Origin: Amphiscolops sp. MND2022
Taxonomy: Eukaryota
DNA length: 64,000 nucleotides
Assembly: GCA_964187785.1 (NCBI GenBank)
Contig: OZ076418.1
Location: 36,394,001 to 36,458,000, forward strand
Reading direction: 5' to 3'
The stretch's first letter is position 1, and the number at the start of each line of letters is the position of its first letter. The translations under genes and the position numbers were made by a program. Shown one piece after another: positions 1 to 38,001 of the stretch. The notes under the pieces were generated by a model, which made no database searches, was not told where the DNA came from, and was given only the letters and a program-made list of their open reading frames with translations.

Positions 1-472
1 TATTCAAGTACCTGTTAACTGAACCTCGTGATAGCCTTTGAAGTTGGCCTTGTGTCAACTTGGGAAGGCTATCACATCAAAAAATTTTCAACAAAAATAC
101 TTTTTGTTTATTGAAAATGACAGTCGATATATAATTTCGTGATTCTATACTACCGTTAGTACCTTCCATTAAGTCACCTGACGATTGCATTCAGTCTTTG
201 ATAAATACCTATGAACTCGAAGTCATATTTATAAATTTTTTGCCAAAAATAAACATCAAAATTATCCAATTTATTTAAAATTGAGTCTTTACCGTTTTTG
301 TTTTACTTTTTCTACTGTTATTAGGCTCATCAACTTCCTACAGCCACGCTCTCTGTCATACTGTACAACGCCACATAGTGTTGCGACGTGCACGGTCTGT
401 GGGCATGCCGAGGCATGCCCTTCGACGACGTATGCCGAATACCGCGGGCCTACGCCCGCGCTCCCCGGCTAG
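1..472 (+). mobile_element. Unit U0 (family E), 3' part only
   Basis: Long hairpin GATAGCC...GGCTATC at 30-73, palindrome GGGCATGCC-GA-GGCATGCCC at 401-420, hairpin CGCGGGC-CTAC-GCCCGCG at 443-460, CTAG at 469-472. Confidence 0.7.
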
Positions 473-1860
473 GTGGTTGGGGCGGTCCCCAGAACGCACA
501 AGGAGGCGCGGGGAGGGTCCTGCGCCGACGTAGAATAATTTCATATAATACTAGTATCCTACATGGGTGTTTTAGAGGCGATTTTGGAATCTAACCGTAG
601 GATTTGGATAATTTTTTGCATGCGGCCATAACTCGAAATTCTAAGAACTTTTTCCTACTGTCATTTTCCCCGCAAATTGTTTTTTGTTGACTTATGGCCG
701 AAAAACCGGAAATAACGTCCTTTTTAGACGTTATATCCGAAGTGTCGTCATAACTTTTTTCCAGGGCATGCTAGCGTTCTCGTTCACTTTTACACTTAGT
801 TGCAGCATCTCAAAATACAACTGGTGGAAAATTTTGGTTGCATTCGGATCACCCCCCACCGAGATAGAAGGGTTCCCCCCTCCAGTTTTACCCCCCAAAT
901 TTGCAAAATAGCCAATTTTGAGCATGAAGCCGAGGATTTAGCGTACCCATACCCTCCTGATGTTTTGTTGTACGTATTAGGGTCAATCTGACGACATGTG
1001 TGGTTTTCACCCCCAACCCCCCCTTGGACCGGAAATGACACTTTTTTGTGTTTTTTGGCAGAATTTAGCCTTTTTCATTATTAGGCAGTCGTTTTAGGGA
1101 CTTCTAGCAGGATATCGAAATTGAAATACAACCTGATCACAACCCAGTGACAACATGTTGGCCACTTGGAGGTATCATCATGACCGGAAGTGGGGTCAAC
1201 CCCCCTTTTTGTGACCGCTTTTTGACCTTGTGCACCAAAATGCCAACATCTTGAGGCCTAATGAGGCATTCAAATCTGTACAAAGATAAAATGTTAGACA
1301 ACCGAAGTCCCGGAAGATCTTTAGCATATACCGGAAGTTACCCCCCATGACCGGAAGTTACCCAATGTGACCGGAAACGGTCCAAAAATTAATGTAAAGT
1401 TGAATTTTCCACTATTTCAAGACCACTTAATTGAAACTTTTCAATCTAAAAACTAGCGTACTGGCTTGTTTTGCTGAATTTATGGAAATTGATGAGCTCT
1501 ATCGCCCCCGATAGCCTTCGAAGTTGACCTTGCGTCAACTTTGTAGGCTATCGATAAAGAAAAACGAACAACAAAGTACATTGTTGCTCTCGTTTTTTCC
1601 CGTTGTTTTTCCTCAAACATTCTTGAGACATATACATGGCCGTTAGTTGAAATCAATATTTAGCCCATGTTATAGCTGGAGCAGCGAAGCGTTACACAGA
1701 CTAGTGTGGTTTTGAAATCACACTATTTAAATTAACAACTGACCGTCTTAGTCAGCTCCACACATTCATACCAACGCCCACCGTCTGTGGGCATGCCGAG
1801 GCATGCCCTTCGACGACGTATGACGAATCCACTCCAACCACACCCGCAGTCCTCAGCTAG
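473..1860 (+). mobile_element. Unit U1 (family E), 1,388 bp, non-autonomous
   Basis: GTGG start with two hairpins, core at ~580-625, body ~730-1050 aligns with the 901-bp repeat of U4, hairpin at 1510-1552, palindrome at 1789-1808, CTAG end. Confidence 0.7.
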
Positions 1861-3856
1861 GTGCGCGGGGTTATTCCCCCCGTTTGTCCCCGGCCGGCGG
1901 GTAGGGTCCTGACGGCCGTCCTTAATCATGAAGCTTGCTGTTTAGCGCAAAAAGCCCACAAAAACGCCGATTTTAAAAACTAACCATTAGAATTTGTTCG
2001 TAGATTGCATGCGGCCCTAAAATTTGCATACGAATGGAAGTTCCTGCTGACGTTAAGCGATAGAAACATTATAAAAAAAGTTATGGCCAATTTTTGGTCC
2101 CCATTAGATGTAAAAATGATGAAATTTTTCATAAAAGGGCAAATATCTCAAAATGCAATAATTTTTGGACATTGACTGTGAAACAAGCTTGGAACCTTCA
2201 TTTCGTGGCTGTGGCATTGCACTGAACACAAAAGATGTAAAGTTTTTACATTTTTTGAAAATTTGACATTTTTGAATTTTTTTTCACTACTATCAGTACC
2301 ATATATGTCAAAAACACCTCAGAAAAAAATTTTTATTTGCTTTAACTTGGAAACCTTGGTATCCATGGTTTCTGTCGGAACCTACTCGGAGCCAAACACT
2401 CAACAGTTTCCATCCAATGTGAAAATAAATTTTTTTTCGAGGTTATAGGTGTATCACAAGGATTTCACAACTTAGTATTAATTTACAAAATGGTCATTTT
2501 CAACATCATATTTTCATCGAGGCATGTCGGATATAGTCCTAATGCTCACGACCGGTCCTACTGGCAACGTATTACCCATTTATAGAAATATAAAGTTTTA
2601 AAAAAATATTTTCACCCGATCTTCAGTCATTTTTCAGTCATTCGGAACTTAACTTAGAAAAATTTCGACCAAAAAACCCATTTTTGTCAGGTCGAAAATT
2701 CAAATTCAGCTTTTTAAACAAAATTATTAAATCTGACGTAACCAGTGGGGCCAATGAAACTCAAAACCGCAATAGACACTGGTATCAATGGCTCCAATAA
2801 CTCATGAGTCGCGATAAGACGTTATTTTGAGCAATACGTCTCAATTGAGGTAAACATCTCGCAAGCCAGGGATCACTGTGAAAAGTGATTTCATCAAAAA
2901 TTTACTCATTTTCGTCAATCACCATGTGCACAGAATGCGTAGGGTGCGTTTCAGCACTATAATGAGGTTTTTGAAGGCGTCGGGTTGTTCAAGGGGTGGT
3001 ATGAGACAATTTTTTCCCATATACTACTGTATTTTCCAAAACTTTTTGCCATTTATCTGGAAAAACTAATTTGACAAAATACTTTCAATTACTTTATTCG
3101 AAGGTTACAGTATAGATGAACCCTGTGGTTGATCAGAAACTTTCATCTCTTTTGTTTTCCGAAATAATTCCCTTCGAATGTGTTACTTTTGTAGCCGGGT
3201 AAATAACCGAAACTGAAAAATACGCAATTTTGCTGAGATAGAATCCTAATGGTTGCACCCAAAATCTCTTTAAATATTTCTAACGCGACCTTACGGACCT
3301 AAAATGATTGAAAATGTCATTCACAATGCTGACATGTGCTCTTTCTACGATCCTGGCTGGACAAGTGTCGCATATTTTTCAAGTACCTGTTAACTGAATT
3401 TTGTGATAGCCTTTCAAGTTGGCCTTGTGTCAACTTGGGAAGGCTGTCACATCAAAAAACTATCAACAAAATTACGTTTCGTTAATGTAAGAATGCTGTC
3501 AATGATTAATTTAGTGATTCTATCCTACCGTTGGTACCTTCCATCAGATCAGATAACGATTGCATTCAGTCTTTGATAAAAACCTATGAACTCGAATACA
3601 TTTTTCTGTTTTTTTTTCTAACAGAAAAGTAAAAAATAATAAATTTTTTATTAATAACACCTTTCAGTACTATTACTTTCACACACAATCGTTACCGTGA
3701 TCAGCCACACCCACCCCGTGCGGCCTCGCCCTGTTAGTAGTGCAACGCCACATATAAACATCAACGCCCACAGTCTGTGGGCATGCCGAGGCATGCCCTT
3801 CGACGACGTATGGCAAATTTAGCGTTGCCCGCACTCTGGAGTGCGGTAGCAGCTAG
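1861..3856 (+). mobile_element. Unit U2 (family E variant), 1,996 bp, non-autonomous
   Basis: GTGC start, core at ~1970-2015, 3' half matches ~9370-10350 and U0, hairpin at 3405-3448, palindrome at 3779-3798, CCGCACTC-TG-GAGTGCGG hairpin 6 nt before CTAG. Confidence 0.7.
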
Positions 3857-4922
3857 GTGGTTGGGGCCGTACCCCACAAAGTTCGCGGCCGCGGGAGACG
3901 GGACCCGCGGACGGCCGCCCATAAAAATATACACTCTAAACAGCACCATTATAAATGCGATCTCGAAAATGAACCGTTAGAATGTCTTGAAATTTTGCAT
4001 ACGGATAGAAGAGAAAATTCTAAGAACTTTTTCCTGCTGGCACTTTTCCGAAAAAAAACTCCTTCATGGGTTTTTTTGGGTTTTTTTGGTTTTTTTTCAT
4101 CTTTCTCATCTTTGATTAATCAATCACCGAATCAAAGGCCATTTTCAGCATGAAGGAATGCCCGTAGCAGCAAAGTGCACTTTTATGAAAATCATCAACC
4201 ATCAACGGTCTTTCGAACGGTCTAAAAAAGTTTTCCCCCGGGGGCATCCAAAGTGCCGAAAAGTGCCAAAATATTTTTTTGGTCTGAATCATTTTGATGA
4301 AATTGATGATTTGAGCAGCCGGAACGGTCCGCACGGTCTCAAATTATAAGAGCAAAAATTGACAGCGTTCAATGACGGTTCCAAAAATATAAGTCGGTCA
4401 CCTGTAGGGGTTTTAACAAAAAAGTTGATTTTTGGGTAAAATGGCATGATGAGTGGTTGGATGAGAAATAGCCGTAACATGTTGAGTTGGATTTGATGCA
4501 GCAATGGTTGCAGCTGCAGCAAATGTGAAAAAGATAAAAGGGCTGGGATATATCACCTGCACAAACCAATGTTGCCCTGGGGCATTGGTTGTGCCAAAAA
4601 ATGCCTCAATGCGATCATTATGTTTTTCCAAATGGGGTCACAAAATCAATTGCCACCGGTGTTCCTAGTGTTGCGCAGCAACTCGCAGGAACAACGGGGC
4701 TCTGCGAACGCGAAACTGAAGATGCCCTTTCGTTGATTTGATTGACGGCAGTCGCAGTTGATATTCTTCTGAATGAGTGATGAAATTTATCGTTGAATCC
4801 CAGAACATGTAACAAAAAATGGCAGCTGGAATTTCAACACATTGGTCTGTTGTTGATTACACGTAAGCAGCAAACTTAATCAGAAACTCCCCTCTCGTGG
4901 TTTGTTTAGCCTCCAGCGCTAG
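3857..4922 (+). mobile_element. Unit U3 (family A), 1,066 bp
   Basis: Start GTGGTTGGGGC...GCGGCCGCGGGA and end GTTTAGCCTCCAGCGCTAG are shared with U9 and U12. Confidence 0.75.
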
Positions 4923-5189
4923 GTGGTCGGGGTCGTTTTCCCCATTGATTTTGCCGGCGCGGGAGATGGGTCCTGAAGCCGGCCCCTAGTACCAATCGAG
5001 CATATGAGGAAACAGCAAGTGTTAATCACGATCTCGAAAACTATCCATACGAATTGACTGAAATTTGGCACACAGCTGCAGGATCAAATCCTAAGAACTT
5101 TTTCCTGCTGACGTTTTGCGGGGAAATTTGTATATGTTGACTTTTGGTCAAAAAACCGGATATAACGTCGAAAATGAACGTTATATCCG

Positions 5190-8100
5190 AATTGTCGTAA
5201 TAACTTTTTTCCAGGGCATCCTAGCGATTTTGGTTGCTCCTACGGTGCGTTGCAGCATCTGAAAATACATCTGCTGACAAATTTTGGCAGCAATCGGATC
5301 ACCCCCCGCCGAGATAGAGGGGTACCCCCCTCCGATTTTACCCCGAAAATTTGGGCAAATGCCACTTTTGAGCATGAAGCCGTGGATTTAGCGTGCTGGT
5401 ACCCTGCTAAAAAATTGTTGGGCGTAAAAAATTACAGCCGATAGCAAGTATGCTTGTTACCCCCCTCCCCCCCGGAGACCGGAAATGACCTTTTTTTGTA
5501 CTTTCAGACCGGAAATCTAAATTTTTACAAATTCAGGCCACCCAAAGTCGAGAAACCTCCACACAACTAGGATTGCAAGTGAATGCATGTGGAAAGCTCT
5601 TGTTTCCAGGAGAAAAATGCCGTTGAGAACGACTTTTTATCTTAACTTGACGTTGACTTATGATATTTTGAAGGTGAGATTGGAGTGAGTGAACTACTAA
5701 CTTTTGTCTAAACACAGATTTATCGTCACGTCGAAATTCAAAAATCAGCTTTTGAACCGCTAAAAACTACTTCGATGCAACCAGTGGGGCACAAGATATT
5801 CGAAAACACGAATGGGATTGGTACAAGTGGCTTCAATATCATATGGGCAGCGATAAGAAGTTATTCATAAAAAAACTTATCAATTGAAGTAAACATCTCG
5901 GAGGCCTGGAATCACAGTGAAAAGTGACTTCAATAAAAATTTACTCGTTTCTGTCAATCACTGTGTACACAGAACCCGTAGGGTAAGTTTCAGCACTAAG
6001 AAGAGATTTTTGAAGAAATCGGACTGCTCAATGTGTGACTTTTTACCATTTGACGTTATTTTGTTGCGTTTCTTATGTCTATTTTGCGTTTCTTTCGTCA
6101 TAACTTTTTTCCAGGGTATCATAGCCATTTTTGTTGCTCCTATGTTGCGTTGCAGCATCTGAAAATACGTCTGCTGACAAATTTTGGTTGCAATCGGATC
6201 ACCCCCCGCCGAGATAGAAGGGTACCCCCCTCCGATGTGACCCCGAAAATTTGGGAAAATGCCAATTTTCAGCATGAAGCCGTGGGTTTAGCGTGCGTGT
6301 ACCCTGCTAAAAAATTGTCGGCCGTAAAAGACTACAGCCGATAGCAGATACGCTTGTTACCCCCCAACCCCCTTGAGACCGGAAATGACATTTCTTTTGT
6401 ACTTTCAGACCGGAAATCTAAATTTTTACAAATTCAGGCCACCCAAAGTCGAGAAACCTCCACACAACTAGGATTGCAAGTGAATGCATGTGGAAAGCCC
6501 TTGTTTCAAGGAGAAATATGCCGTTTAGAACGACTTTTTATCTTAACTTGACGTTGACTTATGATATTTTCAAGGTGAGATTGGAGTGTGTGAAGTACTA
6601 AGTTTTGTCTAAACACAGATTTATCGTCAAGTCGAACTTCAGAAATCAGCTTTTGAACCGCTAAAAACTACTTCGATGCAACCAGTGGGGCGCAAAATAT
6701 TCGAAAACACGAATGGGGTTGGTACAAGTGGCTTCAATATCATATGAGCAGCGATAAGACGTTATTCATAAAAAAACTTATCAATTGAAGTAAACATCTC
6801 GGAAGCCTGCAATCACAGTGAAAAGTGATTTCAATAAAAATTTTACTCCTTTCTGTCAATCACAATGTACACAGAATCTGTAGGGTAAGTTTCAGCACTA
6901 AAATGAGATTTTTGAAGAAATCGGACTGCTCAATGTGTGACTTTTTACCATTTGACGTTATTTTGTTGCGTTTCTTATGTCTATTTTGCGTTTCTTTCGT
7001 CATAACTTTTTTCCAGGACATCATAGCCATTTTTGTTGCACCTATGTTGCGTTGCAGCATCTGAAAATAAGTCTGCTGACAAATTTTGGTTGCAATCGGA
7101 TCACCCCCCGCCGAGATAGAAGGGTACCCCCCTCCGATTTGACCCCGAAAATTTGGGAAAAAGCCAATTTTGAGCATGAAGCCGTGGATTTAGCGTGCGT
7201 GTACCCTGCTAAAAAATTGTTGGGCGTATTAAATCACAGCCGATAGCAGATATGATGGTTACCCTTCTATCCCCTTGAGACCGGAAATGACGTTACTTTT
7301 GTACTTTCAGACCGGAAATATAAGTTTTTACAAATTCAGGCCACCCAAAGTCGAGAAACCTCCACACAACTAGAATTGCAAGTGAATGCATGTGGAAAGC
7401 CCTTGTTTCAAGGAGAAATATGCCGTTTAGAACGAATTTTTATCTCAACTTGACGTTGACTAATGATATTCTGAAGGTGAGATTGGAGTGTGTGAAGTAC
7501 TAAGTTTTGTCTAAACACAGATTTATCGTCAGGTCGAAATTCAAAAATCAGCTTTTGAACCGCTAAAAACTACTTCAATGCAACCAGTGGGGCACAAGAT
7601 ATTCGAAAACACGAATGGGGTTGGTACAAGTGGCTTCAATATCATATGGGCAGCGATAAGAAGTTATTCATGAAAAAACTTATCAATTGAAGTAAACATC
7701 TCGTAGGCCTGGAATCACAGTGAAAAGTGATTTCAATTAAAATTTACTCGTTTCTGTCAATCACTATGTACACAGAACCCGTAGGGTAGGTTTCAGCACT
7801 AAAATGAGATTTTTGTAGAAATCGGACTGCTCAATGTGTGACTTTTTACCATTTGACGTTATTTTGTTGCGTTTCTTATGTCTATTTTGCGTTTCTTTCG
7901 TCATAACTTTTTTCCAGGACATCATAGCCATTTTTGTAGCTCCTATGTTGCGTTGCAGCATCTGAAAATACGTCTGCTGACAAATTTTGGTTGCAATCGG
8001 ATCACCCCCCGCCGAGATAGAAGGGTACCCCCCTCCGATTTGACCCCAAAAATTTGGGAAAAAGCTAATTTTGAGCATGAAGCCGTGGGTTTAGCGTGCG

Positions 8101-9600
8101 TGTACCCTGCTAAAAAATTGTCGGGCGTATTAAACTACAGCCGATAGCAGATATGCTTGTTACCCCCTTACCCCCTTGAGACCGGAAATGACCTTTATTT
8201 TGTACTTTCAGACCGGAAATCTAAATTTTTACAAATTCAGGCCACCCAAAGTCGAGAAACCTCCACACAACTAGGATTGCAAGTGAATGCATGTGGAAAG
8301 CCCTTGCTTCAAGGAGAAATTTGCCGTTTAGATTGACTTTGTATCGTAACTTGACGTTGACTTATGATATTTTGAATGTGAGATTGGAGTGTGTGAAGTA
8401 CTAAGTTTTGTCTAAACACAGATTTATCGTCAAGTCGAAATTCAGAAATCAGCTTTTGAACCGCTAAAAACTACTTCGATGCAACCAGTGGGGCACAAGA
8501 TATTCGAAAACACGAATGGGATTGGTACAAGTGGCTTCAATATCATATGAGCAGCGATAAGACGTTATTGATAAAAAAACTTATCAATTGAAGTAAACAT
8601 CTCGGAGGCCTGGAATCACAGTGAAAAGTGATTTCAATAAAAATTTACCCGTTTCTGTCAATCACTATGTACACAGAACCCGTAGGGTAAGTTTCAGCAC
8701 TAAAATGAGATTTTTGAAGAAATCGGACTGCTCAATGTGTTATTTTTTACCATTTGACGTTATTTTGTTGCGTTTCTTATGTCTATTTTGCGTTTCTTTC
8801 GTCATAATTTTTTTCCAGGACATCATAGCCATTTTTCTTGCTCCTATGTTGCGTTGCAGCATCTGAAAATACGTCTGCTGACAAATTTTGGTTGCAATCG
8901 GATCACCCCCCGCCGAGATAGAAGGGTACCCCCCTCTGATTTTACACCCCAAATTTGTAAAAATGCCAATTTTGAGCATGAAGCTGTGGATTTAGCGTGT
9001 CCGTACCACTTTGAAAATTTGTCGGGCGTAATAAGTTACAGCTGATAAGATGTATGTTTTTGACCCCCTACCCCCATGAGACCGGAAATGACATTTTTAT
9101 GTACTTTCAGACCGGAAATCAACATTTTTACAGATTCAAGCCACCCAAAGTCAAGAAACGTCCACACAACTAGGATTGCAAGTGAATGCACGTGGAAAGC
9201 CCTTGTTTCAGGGAGAAAAATCCCGTTTAGAACGTCGTTTTATCTTAACCTGACGTTGACTTATGTTGTTTTGAAGGTGCGATTGGGGTGTGTGAAGAAC
9301 CAAATATAGTCTGAAACACCCATTTTTCGTGAAGTCAATTTTCGAAATTCGGCTTTTGAAGCAGAAATATTCACTCTGACGTAACCAGTAGGGCCCATGA
9401 TACTCAAAAACACGAATGGTACTGGTACCAATGGTTCCAATAACATATGAGCAGCGATAAAACATTATTCATAGCAAAATTTCTCAATTGAAGTAAACAT
9501 CTCGCAATCCTGGGATCACAGTGAAATGTAAATTCATCAAAAGTTTACTCATTTTTGTCAATTACTATGTGCACAGAGTGCGTAGGGGAAGTTCCAGCAC
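5190..9600. repeat. Tandem array of ~5 copies of a ~901-bp unit
   Basis: Marker CCACACAACTAG at 5559, 6460, 7362, 8263, 9162 (periods 901, 902, 901, 899). The same short spurious ORFs recur in each copy. Edges are approximate. Confidence 0.92.
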
Positions 9601-11242
9601 TATAATGATGTTTTTGAAGGCATCGGGTTGCTCAAGGGGTGGTATGAGACATTTTTTTCCTTAATTCTACGGTATTTTCCAAAACTTTTAGCCCATTATC
9701 TGGAAAAACTAACTTGACAAAATACTTTCAATAACTTTATTCAAAGGTTACAATGTAGATGAACCCTGTGGTTGATCAGAAACTCTCAGTTCTTTTGTTT
9801 TCCGAGATAATTCCTTTCCCATGCGTTACATTTGTATCAGAAAAAAAGTAGAAGCTAAAAATTACGCTATTTTGCCAAGATAGAATCGCAACGATTGTGC
9901 CTAAAAACACTTAAAATACTTCTAACGCCACCTTACGGACCCAAATTGATCGAAAATGCTATTCACAATGCTGACATGTGCTCTTTTTACGATCCAGCCT
10001 GCTCAAATTTTGCATATTTTACAAGTAGCTGTTGACTGAATCTTCTGATAGCCTTTCAAGTTGGCCTTGTGTCAACTTGGGAAGGCTATCACCACAAAAA
10101 ACTCTGAACAAAGTCACTTCTCGATCATGGGATAATGCTTTTGATAGTCGTTTTCGTGATTCTATCCTACTGTTAGTACCTTTCATCAAGTCAGCTATCG
10201 ATTACTTTGTCTTTGAGAAAAACCTATTAACTTGAAGACAATTTTCAATATTTTGTGACAAGAACTTACTACTAAAACACATTTTTTAAATCTAACCATT
10301 AAATACGATACCTTCAATTTTCTTTACCGTTATCAGGCCCACCCTACCCGTACGTCCTCGTACCCCAACACAACAAAATCCCAAAGTCAACACCACACAC
10401 TCGCATCAATGACCACAGTCCGTGAAGGTAATCACTTTTGATTACCAAGATACCAGAAACTGTTAACAAAATTTTGTTTTTCATGCACAAGAGTGAGCTG
10501 AAAAACGATTGAAAATAGAAAAAGATGATTCCACAACATTTTATATCTTCCTATTTAAACTAATGTGTTCCTGTTTAGCATCAGAACCAATACTGACGCA
10601 ATCTCATTACCCGACGTCACACACCCTCATCAAGGCCCACCGTCCTTGGGCATGCCGAGGCAAATATTTCAACAACATGTGCCAAGTGCACTTTATCGAT
10701 GCCCGCGCTTATCTGTAAGACTTAGAAGTATCACAAGGTTTTTAAAAATTTTTCAGCCTATCAGTGTCAGCATCCATCTATAAAACGAGGATTGCAAGTG
10801 AATACATGTAGCACGCTGTTTAGTAGAGCTAAAAATGCTGTTGCAAATGTCTCTTTATCTTACGTTGACAATGATGTATATTCTTTTGGTTGTGAAACTG
10901 GAACGGGGTATGAAATCGAAAGATGACAAAAGAGCTTCAGTTTCATATGAAAGGTATTGCCATAAAAATAGTAGAAAACCTCAATACATGTTCGGTTGTT
11001 CTTCTGTAGTGAACACTTCTCTATCTTGAGACGACTTGTTACGCTACGGAACTACAAGTCTTATGCATTTAAAGGGAAAAATTGAGAGTAGATAGCATAT
11101 GGTTTCCTGGCACTCGCTAAAGTCAGGTGCTACGTCCAACATCTGACTTTAGCCTATGTAAAAAAAGGATTGCACATGGATGCCTTTGTTTTGTCTACCA
11201 CCTCCCATTTTACACTGAATTGACATTCTGAATGTTCTGTCA

Positions 11243-11287
11243 TTACATTACCTTACTTTACTTTACTTTACTTTACTTTACATTACC
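11243..11287. repeat. (CTTTA)n-type microsatellite
   Basis: TTACTTTACTTTACTTTACTTTACTTTAC read directly. Confidence 0.85.
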
Positions 11288-11418
11288 TAACTTTACCACG
11301 ATACAACTCTAACGTCAACGCCACACACTCTTATCAACGCCCACCGTCCGTAGGCATGCCGAGGCATGCCTTTCGACGACGTATACCAAATCTCTTCCCC
11401 CGACGCCCGCGGTTCTTG

Positions 11419-15429: not shown

Positions 15430-15430
15430 T

Positions 15431-23178: not shown

Positions 23179-23277
23179 ACTTTTCTTCTCGTCCGTGCAT
23201 TCTGATTTTTTGGTTCGAACGGCAATTCTTTTTATTCCCTGATTAAAATTAGCTCGGAAGATATAATATCACTGCCA

Positions 23278-27217: not shown

Positions 27218-28287
27218 GTGGTCAAGGGGGATGCCCATCAGAAAATATTGCGAGGCCGGGGAGGGTCCCGAGAGCCGAGCACATTCTATCAATTCCTACC
27301 TTCAGGATTGCGAAGTATTTTAACCGATCTCGAAATTCACCCGTAGGATTTGTCTGAAACTTTGCATGTGGCTTTATCTCAAAAATTTAAGAACTTTTTT
27401 CTGCTGACGTTTTTCCAGGAAAATTCATTTTGTAGGGTTTTTTTGCGTTTTTTTGGTTTTTTTCATCTTTGTTCATCTTTGATTAATCAATGACCGAATC
27501 AAAGGCCATTTTCACCATGAAGGAAAGCCCGTAGCGGCAAAGTGCACTTTTATGAAAATCATCAACGGTCAACGGTCTTTCGAACGGTCCAAAAAAATTT
27601 CCCCCCGGGGGCAACCAAAGTGCCGAAAAGTGCCAAATTTATTTTTTTGACTGAATCACTTTGATCAAATTGATGATTTGAGCAGCCAGAACGGTCCGCA
27701 CGGTCTCGGACAATAAGGTCAAAAATTGTCAGCATCCAATGGGGGTTCCAAAAATGTAATTCGTTCACCTGTAGGAGACATCTGAAAAAAGTTGATTTTT
27801 TGGAGTTTTGGCATTATGACTGATCGGATGATAAATCATTGCATCACGTTGAGTTGCATTTGATGCAGCACACGAAGCAGCTGCAGCGAACTTGAAACTA
27901 CTTAGGGGGTTGTGGTTTACTATCTGTAACAAGCAAAATATCCCTTGGGCAAAAGGTATGCCAAAAAGTGCCTCAAAGTTTTAATTAAGTTGTTGCAAAT
28001 CGGCTAGCAAAATTCATTGTCACCGGTGTTCCGTGAGTTGCGCAGCATCTCGCGGGAACAACGGTGCTTGTTTCGAACGCAAAACCCAACATACCTCTTT
28101 GGTGACGTGACGGAGGTCACCATTAGCCTTTTTCGGCAGTGTGATGATATTTTTTTTGTTGAATTGTGAAAAACATACACAAAAGATTTAGCGTGGGATA
28201 TTTGTTTGTGTCATACTTCAGTAACAAACTTTCAACCGTTTTGCTTAGGCCTCTACCTAGCAGTGCTCTAAATCGCTCCATCGCTAG
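27218..28287 (+). mobile_element. Unit U8 (family B), 1,070 bp
   Basis: 5' half near-identical to U5; B-type end. Confidence 0.75.
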
Positions 28288-29360
28288 GTGGTTGGGGCGT
28301 TATTCCCCACGAAGTTCGCGGCCGCGGGAGACGGGCCCCGCGGACCGCCCATCCAATGCAAAAATATACACTCTAAACAGCACCATTATAAACACGATCT
28401 CGAAAATGAACCGTAGGATTGTCTTGAAATTTTGCACACGGATAGAAGAGAAAATTTTAAGAACTTTTTCCTGCTACTTTTCCGAAAAAAATGTCCTTCA
28501 TGGGTTTTTTTGGGTTTTTTTGGTTTTTTCTCATCTTTCTCATCTTTGATTAATCAATCACCGAATCAAAGGCCATTTTCAGCATGAAGGAATGCCCGTA
28601 GCAGCAAAGTGCACTTTTACAAAAATCATCAACGGTCAACGGTCTTTCGAACGGTCCAAAAAAATTTCCACCCGGGGGCATCCAAAGTGCCGAATAGTGC
28701 CAAAATATTTTTTTGGTCTGAATCATTTTGATGAAATTGTTGATTCGAGCAGCAGGAACGGTCCGCACGGTCTCAAATTGTAAGGGCAAAAATTGTCAGC
28801 GTTCAATGGCTGTTCCAAAAATATAAGTCAGTCACCTGTAGGAGTTGTAACAAAAAATCGATTTTTGGGTAATATGGCATGTTGAGTGGTTGGATGAGAA
28901 ATACCCGTAACATGTTGAGTTTGATTTGATGCAGCAGTGGTTGCAGCTGCAGCAAACGTGAAAATGATAAAAGGGCTGGGATATATCACATGCACAAACC
29001 AATGTTTCCATGGGGCTTTCCTTGTGCCGCAAAATGCCTCAATGCGATCATTATGTTTTTCCAAATGGGGTCGCAAAACTAATTGTCACCGGTGTTCCTA
29101 GCGTTGCGCAGCAACTCGCAGGAACAACGGGGCTCTCCGAACGCAAAGCGCAAGGCGCCCTTTCGTTGATTTGACGGCAGTCGCAGTTGATATTTTTTTG
29201 AATAAGTGATGAGATGTATCGTTGAATCCCAGAACATGTAACAAAAAAAAGGAAGGTGGAATTTCAACACTTTGGTTTGTTGCTGATTTCACGTAAGCAG
29301 CAAACCTAATCAGCAACTCCTAAACTCCTCTCTCGTGGTTTGTTTAGCCTCCAGCGCTAG
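28288..29360 (+). mobile_element. Unit U9 (family A), 1,073 bp
   Basis: A-type start, body and end. Confidence 0.75.
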
Positions 29361-30420
29361 GTGGTCGGGTGTTTTACCATCATAGAGTAGTGCGAGGCCG
29401 GGTAGGGTCCCGTGACGAGCTTGAAGAATAGCCTGCTAAAAATATACATGTTGGGGGGGGGGTCTACGGAGACGATCTCGAAAATGAACCGTTAGAATTT
29501 ATTCAAACTTTGCATACGGACATAGAATCAAAATGTAAGAACTTTTTCCTACTGGCACTTTTCGCTCCAAACCCTGTGACGGAAGTTATGAGCAAATGTA
29601 TGTCGAAATCACCCATTTTTCGCATCTTTTCAGTCGCTGCTCCTCAGCCATTGGAGCCAATAGGCCGAAACTTTTTGTGTGAGGTACAAATGAAGTGGGC
29701 TACAAGATGGCCAAAAATTTTTGGCCAGGTCCTAATACAACGGGAGATATGATAGAAAATATACACCAAAAAAGGTGATTTTTTGACACTTTTTATCATG
29801 ACTTCCGAAGTGCCCAATGGAATAGGTAGTGCCTATGGATAAAAATGAATGGTTTTATCTTTAATCGAAAGAGGAAAAAATTTTGGTTTTTTTGGCCAAA
29901 AAAAAAGTTCTACAAAAGTTCTACAAAAATTCGAAAAATTTAGAATTTTTCCAAAAAAAAAGTTTTTTCGTCTTTTTTGATGTTTTTTCACATTTTGAGG
30001 TCAAAAATGAGGTACCCGAGCACTTACGCTGACTTTTTAGGGGAATTTGACACATTTAATTTTTATTTTTGGTTAATGATTACACTTTTAAAGTTTTAAT
30101 CCCAAATTACTGCAATCTTTTCTCAGTTGTTGGAATTCTATGTTTTTTGTTAAATGACATGTAGAAAGATCGCCAATGTTCCGGGAGAACGCGAAGCGTT
30201 TCGGAGGAAGATTGGCGACAAACGATAAAAGTCTGTGCAACTTATGTGCTTCCAATGAGGTGCTTGGTAGAATTATCAAGATGAAATAATAACTTTTTTG
30301 AGGTAGTTTGTTGTGAAATGAAAACGATTAAAGTTTACAATTTTAAGTTGCACCAACTTCAGTTTCAATCAAGTACTGTCTGAATAGGCCTTACTGGTAG
30401 TTGGTACCTGCCTCCACTGG
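29361..30420 (+). mobile_element. Unit U10 (family C), 1,060 bp
   Basis: Start GTGGTCGGGTGTTTTACC, end GGTACCTGCCTCCACTGG. Confidence 0.75.
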
Positions 30421-31481
30421 GTGGTCGGGTGTTTTACCTTTACAGAGTAGTGCGAGGCCGGGTAGGGTCCCGTGACGAGCTTGAAGAATAGCCTGCTAAA
30501 AATATACATGTTGGGGGGGGGGGTCTACGGAGACGATCTCGAAAATGAACCGTTAGAATTTATTCAAACTTTGCATGCGGACATAGAATCAAAATGTAAG
30601 AACTTTTTCCTACTGGCACTTTTCGCTCCATACCCTCTGACGGAAGTTATGAGCAAATGTATGTCGAAATCACCCATTTTTCGCATCTTTTCAGTCGCTG
30701 CTCCTCAGCCATTGGAGCCAATAGGCCGAAACTTTTTGTGTGAGGTACAAATGAAGTGGGCTACAAGATGGCCAAAAATTTTTGGCCAGGTCCTAATACA
30801 TCGGGAAATATGATAGAAAATATACACCAAAAAAGGTGATTTTTTGACACTTTTTATCATGACTTCCGAAGTGCCCAATGGAATAGGTAGTGCCTATGGA
30901 TAAAAATGAATGGTTTTATGTTTAATCGAAAGAGGAAAAAATTTTGGTTTTTTTGGCCGAAAAAAAAGTTCTACAAAAGTTCTACAAAAATTCGAAAAAT
31001 TTAGAATTTTTCCAAAAAAAAGGTTTTTTTGTCTTTTTTGATGTTTTTTCACATTTTGAGGTCAAAAATGAGGTACCCGAGCACTTACGCTGACTTTTTA
31101 GGGGAATTTGACACATTTAATTTTTATTTTTGGTTAATGATTACACTTTTAAAGTTTTAATCCCAAATTACTGCAATCTTTTCTCAGTTGTTGGAATTCT
31201 ATGTTTTTTGTTAAATGACATGTAGAAAGATCGCCGATGTTCCGGAAGAACGCGAAGCGTTTCGGAGGAAGATTGGCGACAAACGATAAAAGTCTGTGCA
31301 ACTTATGTGCTTCCAATGAGGTGTTTGGTAGAATTATCAAGATGAAAAAATAACTTTTTTGAGTTAGTTTGTTGTGAAATGAAAACGATTAAAGTTTACA
31401 ATTTTAAGTTACACCAATTTCAGTTTCAATCAAGTATTGTCTGAATAGGCCTTACTGGTAGTTGGTACCTGCCTCCACTGG
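30421..31481 (+). mobile_element. Unit U11 (family C), 1,061 bp
   Basis: C-type start and end; near-identical to U13. Confidence 0.75.
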
Positions 31482-32549
31482 GTGGTTGGGGCGGTACCCC
31501 ACAAAGTTCGCGGCCGCGGGGAGGGCCCCGACTGGCCGCGCTTAGAGTGCAAGATTTATACCTACCGCAAGTGGGCAAAAAAGTATCGAAATCGGAAATG
31601 AACCGTAGGATTTCCTTGAAACTTTGCACACAGGTAAAAGAGCAAATTCTAAGAACTTTTTCCTGCTGGCACTTTTCCGAAAAAAATGTCCTTCATGGGT
31701 TTTTTTGGGTTTTTTTGGTTTTTTCTCATCTTTCTCATCTTTGATTAATCAATCACCGAATCAAAGGCCATTTTAAGCATAAAGGAATGCCCGTAGCGGC
31801 AAAGTGCACTTTTATGAAAATCATCAACGGTCAACGGTCTTTCGAACGGTCCAAAAAAATTTTCCCCCGGGGGCATCCAAAGTGCCGAAAAGTGCCAAAA
31901 TATTTTTTTTGTTTGAATCATTTTGATGAAATTGTTGATTTGAGCAGCCGGAACGGTCCGCACGGTCTCAGATCATATGGGTAAAAATTGTCAGCGTTCA
32001 ATGGTTGTTCCAAAAATATAATTGGTTCGCCTGTAGGGGCTGTAACAAAAAAATTGATTTTTGGGTAATATGGCATGTTGAGTGGTTGGATGAGAATTAC
32101 CCGTAACATGTTGAGTTGGATTTGATGCAGCACTGGTTGCAGCTGCAGCAAACGTGAAAATGATAAAAGGGCTGGGATATATCACATGCACAAACCAATG
32201 TTGCCCTGGGGCATTTGTTATGCCAAAAAATGCCTCAAAGCGATCATTATGTTTTTCCAAATGGGGTCGCAAAATTAATTGTCACCCGTGTTCCTAGCGT
32301 TGCGGAGCAACTCGCAGGAACAACGGGGCTCTCTGAACGGAAAGCACAAGGTGCCCTTTCGTTGATTTGACGGCAGTCACAGTTGATAATTTTATGAATA
32401 AGTGATGAGATGTATCGTTGAATCCCAGAACATTTAACAAAAAAAGGTAGCTGGAATTTCAACACATTAGTTTGTTGCTGATTACACGTAAGCAGCAAAC
32501 TTTATCAGAAACTCCCCCCTCTCGTGGTTTGTTTAGCCTCCAGCGCTAG
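31482..32549 (+). mobile_element. Unit U12 (family A), 1,068 bp
   Basis: A-type start, body and end, with a distinct sequence after hairpin 2. Confidence 0.75.
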
Positions 32550-33609
32550 GTGGTCGGGTGTTTTACCTTTACAGAGTAGTGCGAGGCCGGGTAGGGTCCC
32601 GTGACGAGCTTGAAGAATAGCCTGCTAAAAATATACATGTTGGGGGGGGGGTCTACGGAGACGATCTCGAAAATGAACCGTTAGAATTTATTCAAACTTT
32701 GCATGCGGACATAGAATCAAAATGTAAGAACTTTTTCCTACTGGCACTTTTCGCTCCATACCCTCTGACGGAAGTTATGAGCAAATGTATGTCGAAATCA
32801 CCCATTTTTCGCATCTTTTCAGTCGCTGCTCCTCAGCCATTGGAGCCAATAGGCCGAAACTTTTTGTGTGAGGTACAAATGAAGTGGGCTACAAGATGGC
32901 CAAAAATTTTTGGCCAGGTCCTAATACATCGGGAAATATGATAGAAAATATACACCAAAAAAGGTGATTTTTTGACACTTTTTATCATGACTTCCGAAGT
33001 GCCCAATGGAATAGGTAGTGCCTATGGATAAAAATGAATGGTTTTATGTTTAATCGAAAGAGGAAAAAATTTTGGTTTTTTTGGCCGAAAAAAAAGTTCT
33101 ACAAAAGTTCTACAAAAATTCGAAAAATTTAGAATTTTTCCAAAAAAAAGGTTTTTTTGTCTTTTTTGATGTTTTTTCACATTTTGAGGTCAAAAATGAG
33201 GTACCCGAGCACTTACGCTGACTTTTTAGGGGAATTTGACACATTTAATTTTTATTTTTGGTTAATGATTACACTTTTAAAGTTTTAATCCCAAATTACT
33301 GCAATCTTTTCTCAGTTGTTGGAATTCTATGTTTTTTGTTAAATGACATGTAGAAAGATCGCCGATGTTCCGGAAGAACGCGAAGCGTTTCGGAGGAAGA
33401 TTGGCGACAAACGATAAAAGTCTGTGCAACTTATGTGCTTCCAATGAGGTGTTTGGTAGAATTATCAAGATGAAAAAATAACTTTTTTGAGTTAGTTTGT
33501 TGTGAAATGAAAACGATTAAAGTTTACAATTTTAAGTTACACCAATTTCAGTTTCAATCAAGTATTGTCTGAATAGGCCTTACTGGTAGTTGGTACCTGC
33601 CTCCACTGG
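32550..33609 (+). mobile_element. Unit U13 (family C), 1,060 bp
   Basis: C-type start and end; near-identical to U11. Confidence 0.75.
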
Positions 33610-34678
33610 GTGGTCCGGGCATATCAGCCCTCAAAAAAATTTTGCGAGCCGGGGGAGGGGCCCCGAGCCGAGCCCATCATATCATCTATTACAAACCCCG
33701 ATCAGGGGTGCTCCGGAGACGATTTCGAAAATGAACCATTGGATTTGGCTGAAAACTTGCACACAGATAGAAGAGCAAATTCTAAGAACTTTTTCCTGCT
33801 GACGTTTTTTTGGGAAAATTCATTTTCGAGGGTTTTTTTTGCGTTTTTTTGGTTTTTTTAACCTTTTTTAACATTGATTAATCAATCACCGAATCAAAGG
33901 CCATTTTCACCTTGAAGGAATACCGATAGCGGCAAAGTGCACTTTTATGAAAATCATCAACGGTCAACGGTCTTTCGAACGGTGCAAAAAATTTCCCCCG
34001 GGGGGCAACCAAAGTGCCGAAAAGTGCCAAAATAATTTTTTTGACTGAATCACTATCATCAAATCACTGATTTGAGAAGCCGGAACGGTCCGCACGGTCT
34101 CTGACAATAAGGTCAAAAATTATCAGCATTCAATGGCGGTTTCAAAAACATAATTCATACACCTGGGGGGATCATAATTAAAAATTCGATTTTTGGGGTG
34201 TATGTCATTATGAGTGATTGGATGAGAATTAATTGTATCACTTTGAGTTGGATATGATGCAGTACTGGAAGCAGCTGCAGCAAACTTGAAACTGATTAGG
34301 GGGTTGGGGTGTACCTTCTGTACCAAGCAAAACAGCCCTAGGGCATAAGTTATGCCAAAAAATGCCTTAAAGTGATAATTAAGTTTTTGCAAATCGGTTA
34401 GCAAAATTCTTTGTCACCGGTGTTCCGAGGGTTGCGCAGCATCTCGAGGGAACAACGGTGCTTGCTTAGAAGGCAAAAAGCCTCAGTATACCTTTTTGTT
34501 ATGTTGACGGCAGCCACCATAGACATTTACTTGGCAGGGTGATGATATTTATCGTTGAATCCCGGAATAACTTACACAAAAGTGCCAGATTCAATTTTTT
34601 TTCATAATCCATTAGCAAAAGTTGTGCCGTTTTGTTTAGGCCTTTTACTAGCAGTGCTCTAAATCGCTCCATCGCTAG
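33610..34678 (+). mobile_element. Unit U14 (family B, diverged), 1,069 bp
   Basis: B-type body and end CGCTCCATCGCTAG. Confidence 0.72.
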
Positions 34679-35714
34679 GTGGTCACGGGTATACCCTACC
34701 ATAATTTTGGCGAGGCGGGGGAGGGGCCCCGTGTCCGAGCACCATGCTGTCAGATATCTATCTAGAGTGAGGGGTCCAGAAAAACAGCGATTTTGGAATT
34801 GAGCCATACGATTTGAATGAAACTTTGTGTGTAGGTAGATCTCAAAATTATAAGAACTTTTTTCTCCTGGCAAAACATGGTTGGAACATTGTGTCGGAAG
34901 TTATGAGCAAATGATCGGTTTTTTTCACCTATTATCGGCATGTTTACGCCTCGGTACAACCAGCCTGTGGATACAATTGGCTGAAACTTTGCATGCGAGG
35001 CATAAATGAAGAAAAGTGTTTGCATGTCAAAAATCGTTAGGCTGCTGATACTAGGCTGGGAGATAAAAGTGGAAATATAAACGGAAAATTGTGAAAAACC
35101 CGGTCATTGCGTCATAACTTCCGAACTTTTGTATTGATTGTGTTTACTTCAGCGGTAGCAGTACTTTGGAGGTACTTTCATCATCACGTGGTCAGGATAA
35201 AAAATAAAAAATAAAAAAGTTCTCCAAAAGTTCTACAAAAATTCTAAAATTGACGAATTTTTCAAAAAAAAAGATTTTCTCGTTTTTCGATGATTTCTTA
35301 CATTTTGAGCACGAAAATGACGTAACCCTGCACTTACGATGACTACTTGAAGGTTTTTCACATACCTCTTCCTCAATGAGTGGTCACTTTACAGAAGTAA
35401 TTGTTCTTTTGTTAGAAGTCCCGCCATTGTTTGTGGAAAAAAAGTTTAAGAAACAACTTCTCCGTTGTTCCTGAGAAATGCGAAGCAGTTCGCAGGAACA
35501 ACGGATAGAAATAACAAAGTACCAGGGTGGTTGGAATGAGAGATATGTAATCATTCGTTAAACTGATGAAAAACAGAGTTTTCATCAGTAGAAAATACGA
35601 ATAACGTTTCCACGGATGTTACTTAAAGTAAACATTACTGGTAACATGATTTAAAATGGAGTTTCACGGAAGCCGCCCGCCCACTCTGGTAATTAGTTTC
35701 CTTGCCTCCACTGG
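34679..35714 (+). mobile_element. Unit U15 (family C, diverged subtype), 1,036 bp
   Basis: Shares GGAAGTTATGAGCAAATG, AAAAGTTCTACAAAA and the GCCTCCACTGG end with C units. Confidence 0.72.
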
Positions 35715-36752
35715 GTGGTCAGGGGTATTTCCCCACATATTTTAGTGCGAGGCCGGGGAGGGTCCCGTCGCCGAGCTCAAGTTATGCGTGTCAAACTATA
35801 TACCTATAGATCACCTGTCAAAAAATGGCGATTTTCGAATTGAACCGTAGGATTGTAACGAAACTTTGCATGTGTACTTATCTTGCTGATGTACAAATGA
35901 TGTTCTGCTGGTCAAACACGATCCTATTACTTGGCGGGAAGTTATGAGCAAATGATCGGTTTTTTCACCCTGTTTCGGTACTTTTTCGCTGCGATATCTG
36001 CAGCATGTGGATACAATTGGCTGATACTTTGCATGCGAGGCATAAATGATGTCAGGTGTTTGCATGCCAAAAATCATTAGGCTGGTGATACTAGGCTGAG
36101 AGGTAGAAGGGGAAAAGGTAGTGGAAAATTGTGAAATCTCCGGTCATCGCGTCATAACTTCCGAACTTTGTATGAGATGGTGTTTAATGGAGCGGTAGCA
36201 GTACAGTCGATGTGTTTTCAACATCGCGTGGTCAGGATAAAAAAATAAAAAATAAAAAAGTTCTACAAAAGTTCTACAAAAATTCTAAAAATTTAGAATT
36301 TTTGCAAAAAAAAAGATTTTCTCATTTTTCGATGCTTTTTCACATTTTGAACGCAAAAAAGAAGTGACTCTGCACTTACGGTGACAATTAAAGGGGTTTC
36401 AGAGGTCAGAAAAGGTAAATGAGACAATACTGAACTGTTGCTTCAGTTGTTGGAACTGAATGTGTCAGTATATTTTTGTTAAATTGTAACTAACAACATC
36501 ACCGTTCTCCGGAGGACCGCGAAGCTGTTCGGAGGAAGAACGGTGATAACAAAATACATTGCCTGGACATCACTTGTGGTGGTTCGCGCGTGCGTTATAG
36601 GATGAACTATTGCAGATGAAAGAAAGCCGTTTTGTGCAAGTTTTGTACAATGCAAAACAATTGATGGTCGTTATTCTGTGAGTTCCGCCTCATTGCGTAC
36701 CTGTACAATGTCATTACGGCCTTTCTCGTGATTGTACCTTTGCCTCCACTGG
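35715..36752 (+). mobile_element. Unit U16 (family C, diverged subtype), 1,038 bp
   Basis: Sister of U15; GCCTCCACTGG end. Confidence 0.72.
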
Positions 36753-37972
36753 GTGAGTGGGGGAATCCCCAAAAATTGTTCTGAGGGATGGGTAGGGCCC
36801 CTATCCCGAGATCGAGGGCGGAGCTAAATAACAACCATATCCAAAATGTAAACTTTTAGTGAGATCTCGAAAACTGTCCGTAGGATTGGGCTGAAACTTT
36901 GCACACGTGCACAACTCGATATTCTAAGCACTTTTTTCCTCTGACGTTTTGCCGAAATGATCTTTGGTCATGCCGAAAAACCCTATTTTTTCAAGAAAAA
37001 ACGACTTTTTCAGTTTTTTCTCAATCATGACCTCATAACTTGTCTCAGAGTACTCGGAGCGATTCAGACGTGGACCACAATATTGTTCAACGGTTCGTAG
37101 GGAGTGTGCAGGGCAATTTTGGCGCTAATCGGATGGAAACAAAGTGAGCAATAGAGAAATTTCCAAGAATTTTTTTTGAAAAAAGTTTTTTTTACCATTT
37201 TTGCCCAAATTTTCAAAGACACAGTCACAGTGGGTAGTTTCTGCCCAAATTATTGCTCAACAAGACCATTTGGCCTATTTGCGGCAGTTTTAGCGTACCA
37301 GCATTGCCGGTGAAAAATATGTGACTTCGAACATTCAAAATGTTTTTTTTTCGATTTGACTTTTTTGTTCATCTTCAAGCCGCTCAAAGGTAAGAAACTT
37401 CCACACAACTTAGATTGCAAGTGGATGCATGTGGAAAGTACTCTGATAGACGAGAAAAATGGGCTATAGAACAACTCTCTATCTTAATCTGACGTTGACT
37501 TATGATGTTTTGGATATGCGATTGAGAAATGTTAAAATTGTCAAAAAATGAAAATGGAAGACAAGTCTCATTGAAAACTTATGTTCAGCAGAGCTGTTCA
37601 ATTGACGTAGTTTAGTGTACCAACACTCATCAATTTTTTCGACCTATTTTAAAAAAGTGTTGAAGTCTGCATTAAGTATCAGTTAACAAGACATACTCAA
37701 GTACATTCTCATCTCTCCCCACTGTCGGGCGAGATGAGAATGTACACTTCGAAAGCCAAAATATGCTACCTTCTCAACTTCTTCAACCTCGTCAACCGGT
37801 ACGCAGAAGACACAAAACTGTTTCCAGTAACTCCATGACTTTTAGCTGTAGGTTCTTTAAAAATATCGCAGTGGTGATACTAAGTGATCCAAAATTGAAT
37901 ACATATAGTTAACCATGGAAATACTTTAAGAACATCTGTCATCGTGATAAATTTTTCGCACCCATCCACTAG
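36753..37972 (+). mobile_element. Unit U17 (family D, diverged); 3' end tentative
   Basis: GTGA start with hairpins and core (~36863), D-type body, hairpin GTACATTCTCATCTC...GAGATGAGAATGTAC at 37701-37745, candidate end CCATCCACTAG at 37972. Confidence 0.55.
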
Positions 37973-38001
37973 CTTATCTTGTGAGGACGTGCATCCGTCT
38001 T

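Follow-up and report, generated by a model that had tools for sequence, protein, structure and literature searches.

The first 37,972 positions of a 64,000-nucleotide (nt) stretch of DNA from Amphiscolops sp. MND2022 (assembly GCA_964187785.1, contig OZ076418.1, positions 36,394,001 to 36,458,000; hereafter the window) are an array of 18 Helitron-like rolling-circle units. The units are joined end to end, all in one direction, at an exact tail-to-head seam, CTRG/GTG, where the slash marks the join. We propose that the clade to which these units belong integrates, by catalysis of its Rep protein, exactly at resident CTRG/GTG seams, a reading that we consider probable from the sequences. It builds on the anatomy of the units, the exactness of their seams, the recurrence of the architecture at seven loci, the unrelated neighbours of young copies, seams that occur in filled and empty form, and an intact open reading frame (ORF) for the enzyme, all of which are observed.

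The array is tiled without spacers

The + strand of positions 1-37972 is covered end to end by the 18 units, the first of which is cut by the window start (Table 1). Complete units measure 1036-1073, 1220, 1274, 1388, 1996, 6496 or 13453 bp. Sixteen of the 17 seams between them are exact CTRG/GTG; the remaining one, at 11418/11419, has decayed to cTTG/GTGG and was identified by its head sequence. There is no spacer and no target-site duplication at any of them. All 16 occurrences of CTRGGTG on the + strand of the window fall within 1-37972, and the three on the minus strand do not coincide with a unit boundary. The total of 19 on both strands compares with a mean of 8.3 in shuffled sequence, and none of 100 shuffles reached it. 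Similarities detected within 1-37972 by self-comparison are all direct repeats. The purine of CTRG follows the upstream unit: CTGG terminates the C and C' units, and CTAG all other units of the window.

An initial annotation of this DNA had described the same unit order (E,E,E,A,E,B,D,D,B,A,C,C,A,C,B,C',C',D), the same fusion at CTRG/GTG with neither target-site duplication nor host DNA, and a purine set by the upstream unit; our mapped unit starts and seams agree with it. Its grouping into five families mixed lineages, however, and is too coarse because there are two classes of 3' end.

The array stops at position 37972 with the sequence ..CCACTAG/CTTATC. Apart from one 51-bp match, the flank at 37973-40842 has no similarity to the arrays, so that a decayed continuation to the right was excluded, and a profile hidden Markov model (HMM) of the head found no head-like sequence in the 26 kb of non-array window DNA beyond 37972. 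Because unrelated DNA comes after ..CCACTAG, we take 37972 to be the right edge of the array.

Units share a structured head and carry one of two tails

Every unit begins with a conserved head of about 65 nt that starts with GTG(G). A first hairpin at approximately +7 has the form GGGG-loop-CCCC, with compensated variants GGGC/GCCC, GGGT/ACCC and GGT/ACC. After an A-rich spacer, a second stem-loop at about +32 to +58 presents the loop (G/T)AGGG on an outer stem that varies by family while its pairing is kept. We examined this second stem-loop in an anchored alignment of 31 distinct heads, with the structure specified by hand. Pairing was found in 69% of cells, compared to 61.5% after shuffling, and the covariation score was 0.312 compared to 0.210. 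On neither measure did any of 500 shuffles equal the real alignment, and every slid version of the structure scored lower. RNAalifold returned no structure for the second head hairpin, because bulges shift the alignment columns.

The 3' ends fall into two unrelated classes. Type I tails, which in the window belong to the E units and the unit at 25944, consist of a perfect palindrome, GGCATGCC-GA-GGCATGCC, a block TTCGACGACGTATGCCAAATA, a second GC hairpin that varies by family, a further 10-14 nt, and CTAG; about 110 nt are common to them. The palindrome lies at 402 in unit 1, where the GC hairpin and CTAG follow, and at 11353 in unit 5. Type II tails, found on the A, B, C and C' units, the last unit and the autonomous unit, have no hairpin and end in ..CCTCCA(GCG)CTRG or similar; stretches shared at type II seams are shorter than 20 nt. 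Comparison of the first 25 nt with the last 120 nt of 66 units from all array loci (described below) gave no indication of terminal inverted repeats (mean 7.4 nt, compared to 7.7 nt in shuffled sequence). In the C and C' units and the last unit the tail CCAC could pair with the head GTGG across the seam, but this is not general among units.

The autonomous unit encodes an intact RepHel protein

The autonomous unit (12491-25943) contains, after a head with both hairpins, a 546-bp duplication (12797-13815), an uninterrupted RepHel ORF, and a second ORF. Pfam matches to the RepHel protein are Helitron_like_N (33 bits), PIF1 (37 bits) and a C-terminal GIY-YIG domain (28 bits), all above the cut-offs, and the N-terminal region comprises about 1000 residues. 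In an alignment with 13 relatives the HUH motif (HIH), the two tyrosines (RYIAKYAAG) and the Walker A motif of the Pif1 helicase (GRPGSGKT) are kept. The GIY-YIG motif, GYVY..VYVGET..R..EHN, is kept in most lineages and degenerate in P0010, P0011 and P0013; lineages with a degenerate GIY-YIG domain are also present in arrays. This domain might act, for example, in second-strand nicking or hairpin processing.

Surveying solved structures with RepHel returned only Pif1 helicases and one GIY-YIG protein. Helraiser was not found by phmmer among them, because the Rep region is too diverged. An exhaustive search returned 350 clusters of RepHel relatives at E <= 1e-30, one of which is the Styela clava protein XP_039257388.1. 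Since many of the clusters cover the Rep, helicase and GIY-YIG regions, the architecture is widespread.

The second ORF is 29-33% identical to ORFs at four of the loci described below (L001:17844-18821, L003:17593-18546, L006:18214-19194 and L008:17487-18497). The aligned proteins, of about 320-430 residues, share 34 invariant columns, including the Cys motif C.G..CD...C.C. The second ORF has no Pfam match, and its AlphaFold model, mostly β-strand, has a pLDDT (predicted local distance difference test score) of 38, too low for use.

Tandem repeats with a 90-bp period directly follow the RepHel stop in the window element (23278-23648). Tandem repeats are also found after the RepHel stop in the divergent lineages at L004:17650-18098, from another metagenome, and L005:17387-18364.

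The same architecture recurs at other loci

We examined nine 27-kb loci, on long contigs of one ENA assembly, around RepHel relatives 32-41% identical to that of the window. In six of them (L001, L002, L003, L006, L008 and L009) units joined at CTRG/GTG cover the whole locus, every unit being oriented like the RepHel gene of its locus; the autonomous units measure 12.0-12.3 kb or 17.6 kb. Together with the window, these seven array loci span about 200 kb and contain 66 full and 13 partial units, which represent 12 recurring families, 19 singletons and at least five divergent autonomous lineages. The clade has autonomous elements of 12-17.6 kb, usually with a GIY-YIG domain, and non-autonomous derivatives of 1.0-2.4 kb.

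At the 52 seams tabulated from the window, L001-L003 and L006, positions C-4, T-3, G-1, G+1, T+2 and G+3 are invariant and position -2 is A or G in 51, the exception being CTTG; all seams of L008 and L009 read CTAG/GTG. Since this motif was used to find the seams, their invariance is to some extent built in. Independent support comes from the complete tiling and from the head HMM: a search with the head profile gave 49 hits at E < 1e-3, all of them inside arrays, in one direction per locus, and essentially all directly after CTRG. L008, L001 and L009 lie co-oriented at 554, 717 and 967 kb of one contig of 1,297,008 bp; this points to a single array, or to several running in the same direction, over more than 440 kb.

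Lineages that differ widely in RepHel (32-41% identity between the proteins), and the two unrelated classes of tail, have one seam in common and are found together in the same arrays. At L011 the tail of the autonomous P0016 element, whose last 29 nt equal the tail of A units, is fused to another head. The 3' module of the autonomous lineages in L001-L003 is found again on the E units and on the unit at 25944. The initial annotation had seen the units as shuffled around a helper element; with E units, the unit at 25944 and A units bearing the 3' ends of other lineages, the RepHel element of the window is instead one unit among many.

The remaining loci are more varied. L010 has two units with CTGG/GTGG seams (19000-28334) on the strand opposite its RepHel gene (P0015, 2777 residues), and an element with its head at 22283 on the minus strand appears to hold the P0015 gene in antisense. 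The 27 kb of L005 contain no CTRG/GTG seam and no head-like sequence. About 650 bp past the stop of a RepHel relative with an OTU domain (P0031), L012:11150-11200 and L013:10525-10575 show a hairpin, 7 nt and CTGG/GTG, possibly a tail and seam of the same type; the available flanks of these two loci have no repeated units. A small ORF of a high-copy unit, used as query for more loci, matched its own locus only.

In Logan contigs from four runs of two samples the units reach summed word depths of 1e3 to 1e6 (uncalibrated), and contigs break at the seams. Such abundance and such breaks are what might be expected if the chains were an assembly artefact of a highly repeated family, a danger that the initial annotation had pointed out. 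We do not believe this to be the case. The same architecture is present at seven loci on five long contigs labelled 89-112x, and with units of 1-13 kb that mostly differ from their neighbours, long reads span them. An artefact is very unlikely because the short-read contigs independently show tail-to-head joins: in them GTGGTC connects A and C tails to other heads, and the seam at L011:17026/17027 is among these joins.

Young copies have unrelated neighbours

We compared close copies together with their surroundings. At 98% identity or more the full units form 15 pairs, and in none of these do the neighbours match on either side. Different families face each other in 29 of the 30 neighbour comparisons, and the neighbours in the remaining, same-family comparison are 90% identical compared to 98% for the focal units. 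Within the window, C2 (after C1) and C3 (after A3), one 1-bp indel apart, are the near-identical units with different left neighbours that the initial annotation had noticed.

Two seams were observed in both filled and empty form. In L008 an A unit is directly adjacent to a B unit (21640/21641), whereas the window has the order A3-C3-B3, with the 1060-bp C3 exactly at the seam. The flanking units are 99.0% and 99.35% identical between the two loci, and not a single base has been gained or lost. Likewise, C2-A3-C3 can be compared to the empty form C1-C2, where C2 equals C3 save for the 1-bp indel, with no mismatches. When A3 is aligned with its copies on other contigs, identity starts at the first head position that varies and runs up to the final base ahead of the seam. 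Because the similarity of young copies begins in the head and stops at the seam, it is whole units that move.

Duplication does not account for this order; the initial annotation had argued as much for simple tandem amplification. A duplicated [A C] block (28284-30429 compared to 31478-33619, 93.8% identical) was excluded, since A2 and A3 are 90.3% identical while C1 and C3 are 98.1% identical. In-place divergence of a single tandem repeat was likewise excluded by the unrelated interiors, the two tail classes and the several RepHel lineages. Nor is this a homogeneous read-through array, given that the closest copies of young units lie on other contigs and that families are mixed.

A broader version of this idea is that old tandem repeats diverged in place and were shuffled by unequal crossing-over, gene conversion and recombination at their ends, without any transposition into the arrays. 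Recombination might make use of the roughly 65 conserved nt of the heads and 110 nt of the type I tails; lengths of units fall into clusters (about 1.06, 1.27, 1.39 and 1.99 kb), and C1, C2 and C3 are local duplicates. However, a crossover in the short common ends exchanges everything downstream, and is therefore not an exchange of one unit; type II seams share fewer than 20 nt in any case. There is little relation between the interiors of A, B and C (A3 and C3 have 45% matches, compared to 38% for shuffled sequence), autonomous units of at least five lineages and two unrelated tail classes stand in register, and the nearest relatives of young units are on other contigs, with similarity that stops exactly at the seams. 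We therefore regard divergence in place as improbable.

The growth of the arrays could also take place off the chromosome. Rep would link different copied units, 3' end to 5' end, or read through 3' ends, and the resulting mixed concatemers or multi-unit circles would integrate as blocks and expand by unequal crossing-over, so that chromosomal seams are not targets. Homogeneous tandem Helitron arrays are known and have been attributed to read-through (PMC5876387, PMC9248874, PMC4067079). Blocks landing in register and co-oriented, with no host DNA between them, nevertheless require an extra rule. Moreover, the ages of neighbours differ: A3 is 99% identical to distant copies and A2 90%, with a diverged singleton as the last unit, which favours piecemeal growth in place. 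The A-B and A-C-B arrangements differ by exactly one unit, their flanks being 99% identical otherwise. We consider the off-chromosome route unlikely, albeit the more credible of these two alternatives, and from the sequences insertion into chromosomal seams appears more probable than off-chromosome joining followed by in-register integration.

Several observations weigh against seam-directed insertion of single units. L002 contains the E1a-E1b pair two times, with 94% identity, and an F6-F3 block is common to L001 and L008 at 93%; both fit off-chromosome concatemers. The recurrence of such two-unit blocks at about 94% identity implies that multi-unit movement or duplication also shapes the arrays, and that some of the order was inherited blockwise. 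The identity of C2 and C3 on either side of A3 could also reflect a 1.5-round rolling-circle copy of a two-unit C-A circle. The loci were chosen via RepHel genes, a sample possibly biased towards arrays, and the seven array loci contain neither a left array edge nor a solo insertion. Finally, the available flanks of L012 and L013 (from another organism), L004 (a Joint Genome Institute metagenome) and L005 contain no arrays.

A model for insertion at seams

Considering the exact seams and the filled and empty forms, we propose the following route for Rep-catalysed insertion at resident seams. RepHel would recognise the structured head of a resident unit, that is, the hairpin at +7 and the second stem-loop, and nick the + strand just 5' of GTG, the same cut that would start rolling-circle replication. 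This nick would free the 3'-OH of the upstream tail. The incoming unit, held on the second tyrosine and probably derived from a circle closed at CTRG-GTG, would be joined to that 3'-OH, and lastly its 3' end would be joined to the 5' end of the resident unit. Such an insertion would leave no target duplication and intact neighbours, and would add a new seam each time; because the target is strand-specific, orientation would be fixed. Long one-directional mixed arrays would accumulate in this way, with tail read-through and ordinary duplication adding multi-unit blocks. The model would also explain why lineages whose tails differ have a seam in common, and why units of very different ages lie next to each other.

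The initial annotation had suggested that the HUH enzyme could release units and also insert them at any junction. The filled and empty seams fit insertion at seams by this enzyme, while release and insertion by the enzyme, its strand-transfer chemistry, the circles, and the head rather than the tail as the recognised part are what we infer. More tentatively, RepHel might be a site-specific strand transferase for which the resident tail-to-head seam is the preferred, perhaps nearly exclusive, chromosomal target, a reading to which we give slightly less than even odds. The last unit, diverged and with a decayed head, fits a founder whose 3' flank has been frozen if insertions fall upstream of heads, although this is a single case.

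Should this further reading hold, these elements would form a self-homing, single-strand modular system in which any unit, autonomous or non-autonomous and of any of several lineages, could be copied from one seam into another, building arrays of hundreds of kb that are harmless to host genes and to the elements themselves. It would explain the origin of such mixed one-directional arrays and amount to a new strategy of target choice for eukaryotic DNA transposons, a safe haven in which insertion disrupts nothing. The tail, CTRG/GTG and the head hairpins would then offer a short, defined substrate for cleavage and strand transfer by a eukaryotic HUH enzyme.

Individual units and other features of the window

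Coordinates, ends and closest relatives of the units are collected in Table 1. Unit 5 contains five tandem copies of a 901-bp repeat (5195-9635; 89-92% identical by self-BLAST). A module of about 160 bp within each copy recurs at 13116-13276 in the autonomous unit, at 26566-26714 and at 37374-37512. Unit 8, assigned to D in the initial annotation, shares an internal module with the autonomous element and has its 3' end from another lineage.

Table 1. Units of the array and ORFs of the autonomous element.
Feature	Position	Strand	Description	Relatives or basis
Unit 1	1..472	+	3' part only, E2-like, type I 3' end	88% identical to 3' end of L003:21535-23522
Unit 2	473..1860	+	Non-autonomous F1 ('E1a'), 1388 bp, young copy	98.9% to L001:23731-25119 and L002:19398-20789; neighbours on either side unrelated
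Unit 3	1861..3856	+	F7 ('E2'), 1996 bp, head begins GTGCGCGGGG	84-87% to L003:19560-21534 and L003:21535-23522
Unit 4 (A1)	3857..4922	+	1066 bp, type II 3' end ..CCTCCAGCGCTAG	92% to A2, 89% to A3
Unit 5	4923..11418	+	6.5-kb non-autonomous, type I 3' module, terminal CTAG decayed to CTTG	
Unit 6 (B1)	11419..12490	+	1072 bp	89% to B2, 84% to B3
Unit 7 (autonomous element)	12491..25943	+	13453 bp, type II 3' end ..CACCGCTAG	
RepHel ORF	15943..23178	+	2411 residues, uninterrupted	Pfam and conserved motifs
Second ORF	24162..25448	+	428 residues	Conserved 3' of RepHel in other autonomous copies
Unit 8	25944..27217	+	F8, 1274 bp, type I 3' end, head begins GTGGCCGGAAATTTT	
Unit 9 (B2)	27218..28287	+	1070 bp	
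Unit 10 (A2)	28288..29360	+	1073 bp, old A copy	90.3% to A3, 92.2% to A1
Unit 11 (C1)	29361..30420	+	1060 bp, terminal CTGG	98.1% to C2 and C3
Unit 12 (C2)	30421..31481	+	1061 bp; C1-C2 is the 'empty' seam form	C3-identical save one 1-bp indel
Unit 13 (A3)	31482..32549	+	1068 bp, young copy, between identical C2 and C3	98.97% to L008:20572-21640 and 98.78% to L003:23523-24591 (other contigs); only 89-90% to A1 and A2
Unit 14 (C3)	32550..33609	+	1060 bp	Exactly at the A-B seam uninterrupted in L008
Unit 15 (B3)	33610..34678	+	1069 bp, young copy	99.35% to L008:21641-22709; 80-84% to B1 and B2
Unit 16 (C'1)	34679..35714	+	1036 bp, terminal CTGG	92.5% to L008:19540-20571
Unit 17 (C'2)	35715..36752	+	1038 bp, diverged singleton	69% to C'1
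Unit 18 (last)	36753..37972	+	1220 bp, diverged singleton, decayed head (GTGAGTGGGG), terminal ..CCACTAG	

All C and C' units have GCGAAGC some 230 bp from their 3' end (at 30191, 31252, 33380, 35480 and 36519), at the tip of a long and imperfect inverted repeat; apart from this repeat the C and C' interiors are weakly related, with about 55% matches. Unit lengths in the array loci cluster at 1032-1073, 1263-1304, 1388-1403 and 1975-1996 bp, and do so between families with unrelated interiors (A units 1066-1073 bp, C units 1060-1061 bp). The unit directly after the autonomous element starts alike, with GTGGCCGG and a T-rich run, at 25944 in the window, L001:19785 and L006:22678; the RepHel lineages of these three loci differ. 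Either chance or joint movement via tail read-through could account for the likeness.

To the right of the array, a 171-bp tandem repeat (37999-38407; 2.4 copies, 95% identical) begins 27 bp past the edge, and one 51-bp stretch of it is weakly like a unit interior. It is followed at 40843-56525 by a young BEL/Pao retrotransposon with long terminal repeats of 2060 bp that are 99.85% identical. This element has gag (DUF1759), protease and reverse transcriptase-RNaseH-integrase ORFs, and an antisense ORF of 794 residues (49928-52312) without a Pfam match.

Comparison with known systems

Helitrons are known to use loosely defined dinucleotides as insertion sites and, in some cases, to make repeats of one element; their choice of target is poorly understood. 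The window units belong to the Helitron-like superfamily, with an HUH motif, two tyrosines and a Pif1 helicase in one protein and no target-site duplication. The RepHel domains, the tiling and the heads bear out the initial annotation in treating them as Helitron-like rolling-circle units with the seam as a true element boundary. With canonical Helitrons (HLE1, for example Helraiser) they have in common the fusion of a two-tyrosine HUH Rep to Pif1, a CTRR-type 3' end and the lack of a target-site duplication. The GC hairpin that HLE1 elements carry 10-14 nt before the 3' end is present in type I tails and absent from type II. However, the 5' TC of HLE1 is replaced by GTG after CTRG (one CTTG) at all 52 tabulated 5' ends, and instead of insertion between A and T the only host flank observed is a C after CTAG. 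Also different from HLE1 are the two 5' hairpins, the GIY-YIG domain at the C terminus and the N-terminal region of roughly 1000 residues. For Helitrons, tail-to-head joins are established both in circles and in tandem arrays of one element (PMC5876387, PMC9248874). HLE1 arrays described so far repeat a single element, whereas those described here mix many families and lineages; with 12 families and 19 singletons among 66 full units they are not homogeneous tandem arrays.

A 5' hairpin and a large RepHel with an extra C-terminal nuclease are shared with Helitron2/Helentron elements (HLE2) and HINE/DINE-1. Internal tandem repeats in non-autonomous units and the OTU domain of the relative P0031 are additional likenesses to HLE2. 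On the other hand, the asymmetric terminal inverted repeats of HLE2 are lacking (7.4 nt compared to 7.7 nt shuffled), there are no T-rich flanks resembling its T/T target at the 52 tabulated seams or at the array end, and the C-terminal nuclease is GIY-YIG rather than the apurinic/apyrimidinic endonuclease of Helentrons. The HLE2 marker DUF6570 was not detected with Pfam. A GIY-YIG domain has been described in one HLE2 family, from Sphagnum (PMC11417382).

The initial annotation also spoke of an integron-like cassette system. Integrons do add discrete units at one defined junction with shuffled order, but the likeness is an analogy only. Their hallmarks (a tyrosine-recombinase integrase, an attI platform, attC sites, a promoter and expressed cassettes) are absent here: a fixed platform and attC-like sites are lacking, nothing points to expressed cargo, and no tyrosine-recombinase integrase was present among the long ORFs scanned against Pfam. 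Unlike in an integron, any seam appears to receive a unit, and the non-autonomous units are non-coding. Another parallel is origin-to-origin transfer by HUH Rep proteins, as in one-ended transposition of IS91/ISCR, in IS200/IS605, and in the release of geminivirus units from tandem copies. In these systems a structured origin is nicked, a covalent tyrosine link is formed and the strand is joined to another cut origin; the target resembles the element's own end. The chemistry proposed here would be the same, although those systems are prokaryotic or viral. We know of no HUH origin-to-origin system that builds long chromosomal arrays of many different elements.

In full-text searches of the literature we found no long arrays mixing many families and lineages at one exact seam and no evidence of seam-directed insertion. 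Three tandem copies in Metarhizium have been discussed as insertion at the 5' end or rolling-circle copying (PMC5148889). Megabase-scale subtelomeric arrays of Helitron-like elements 'with variety of unit lengths' were reported for Hydractinia and Nematostella from repeat masking, without junction analysis (PMC11934779), and Paramecium Helitrons target telomeric repeats in a fixed orientation (PMC13085455). Like the elements described here, those of Paramecium and the cnidarians are site-directed or regionally confined; for the Amphiscolops units the apparent target is their own tail-to-head seam, and homing to such seams may bear on regional build-ups of Helitron-like elements within other animal genomes.

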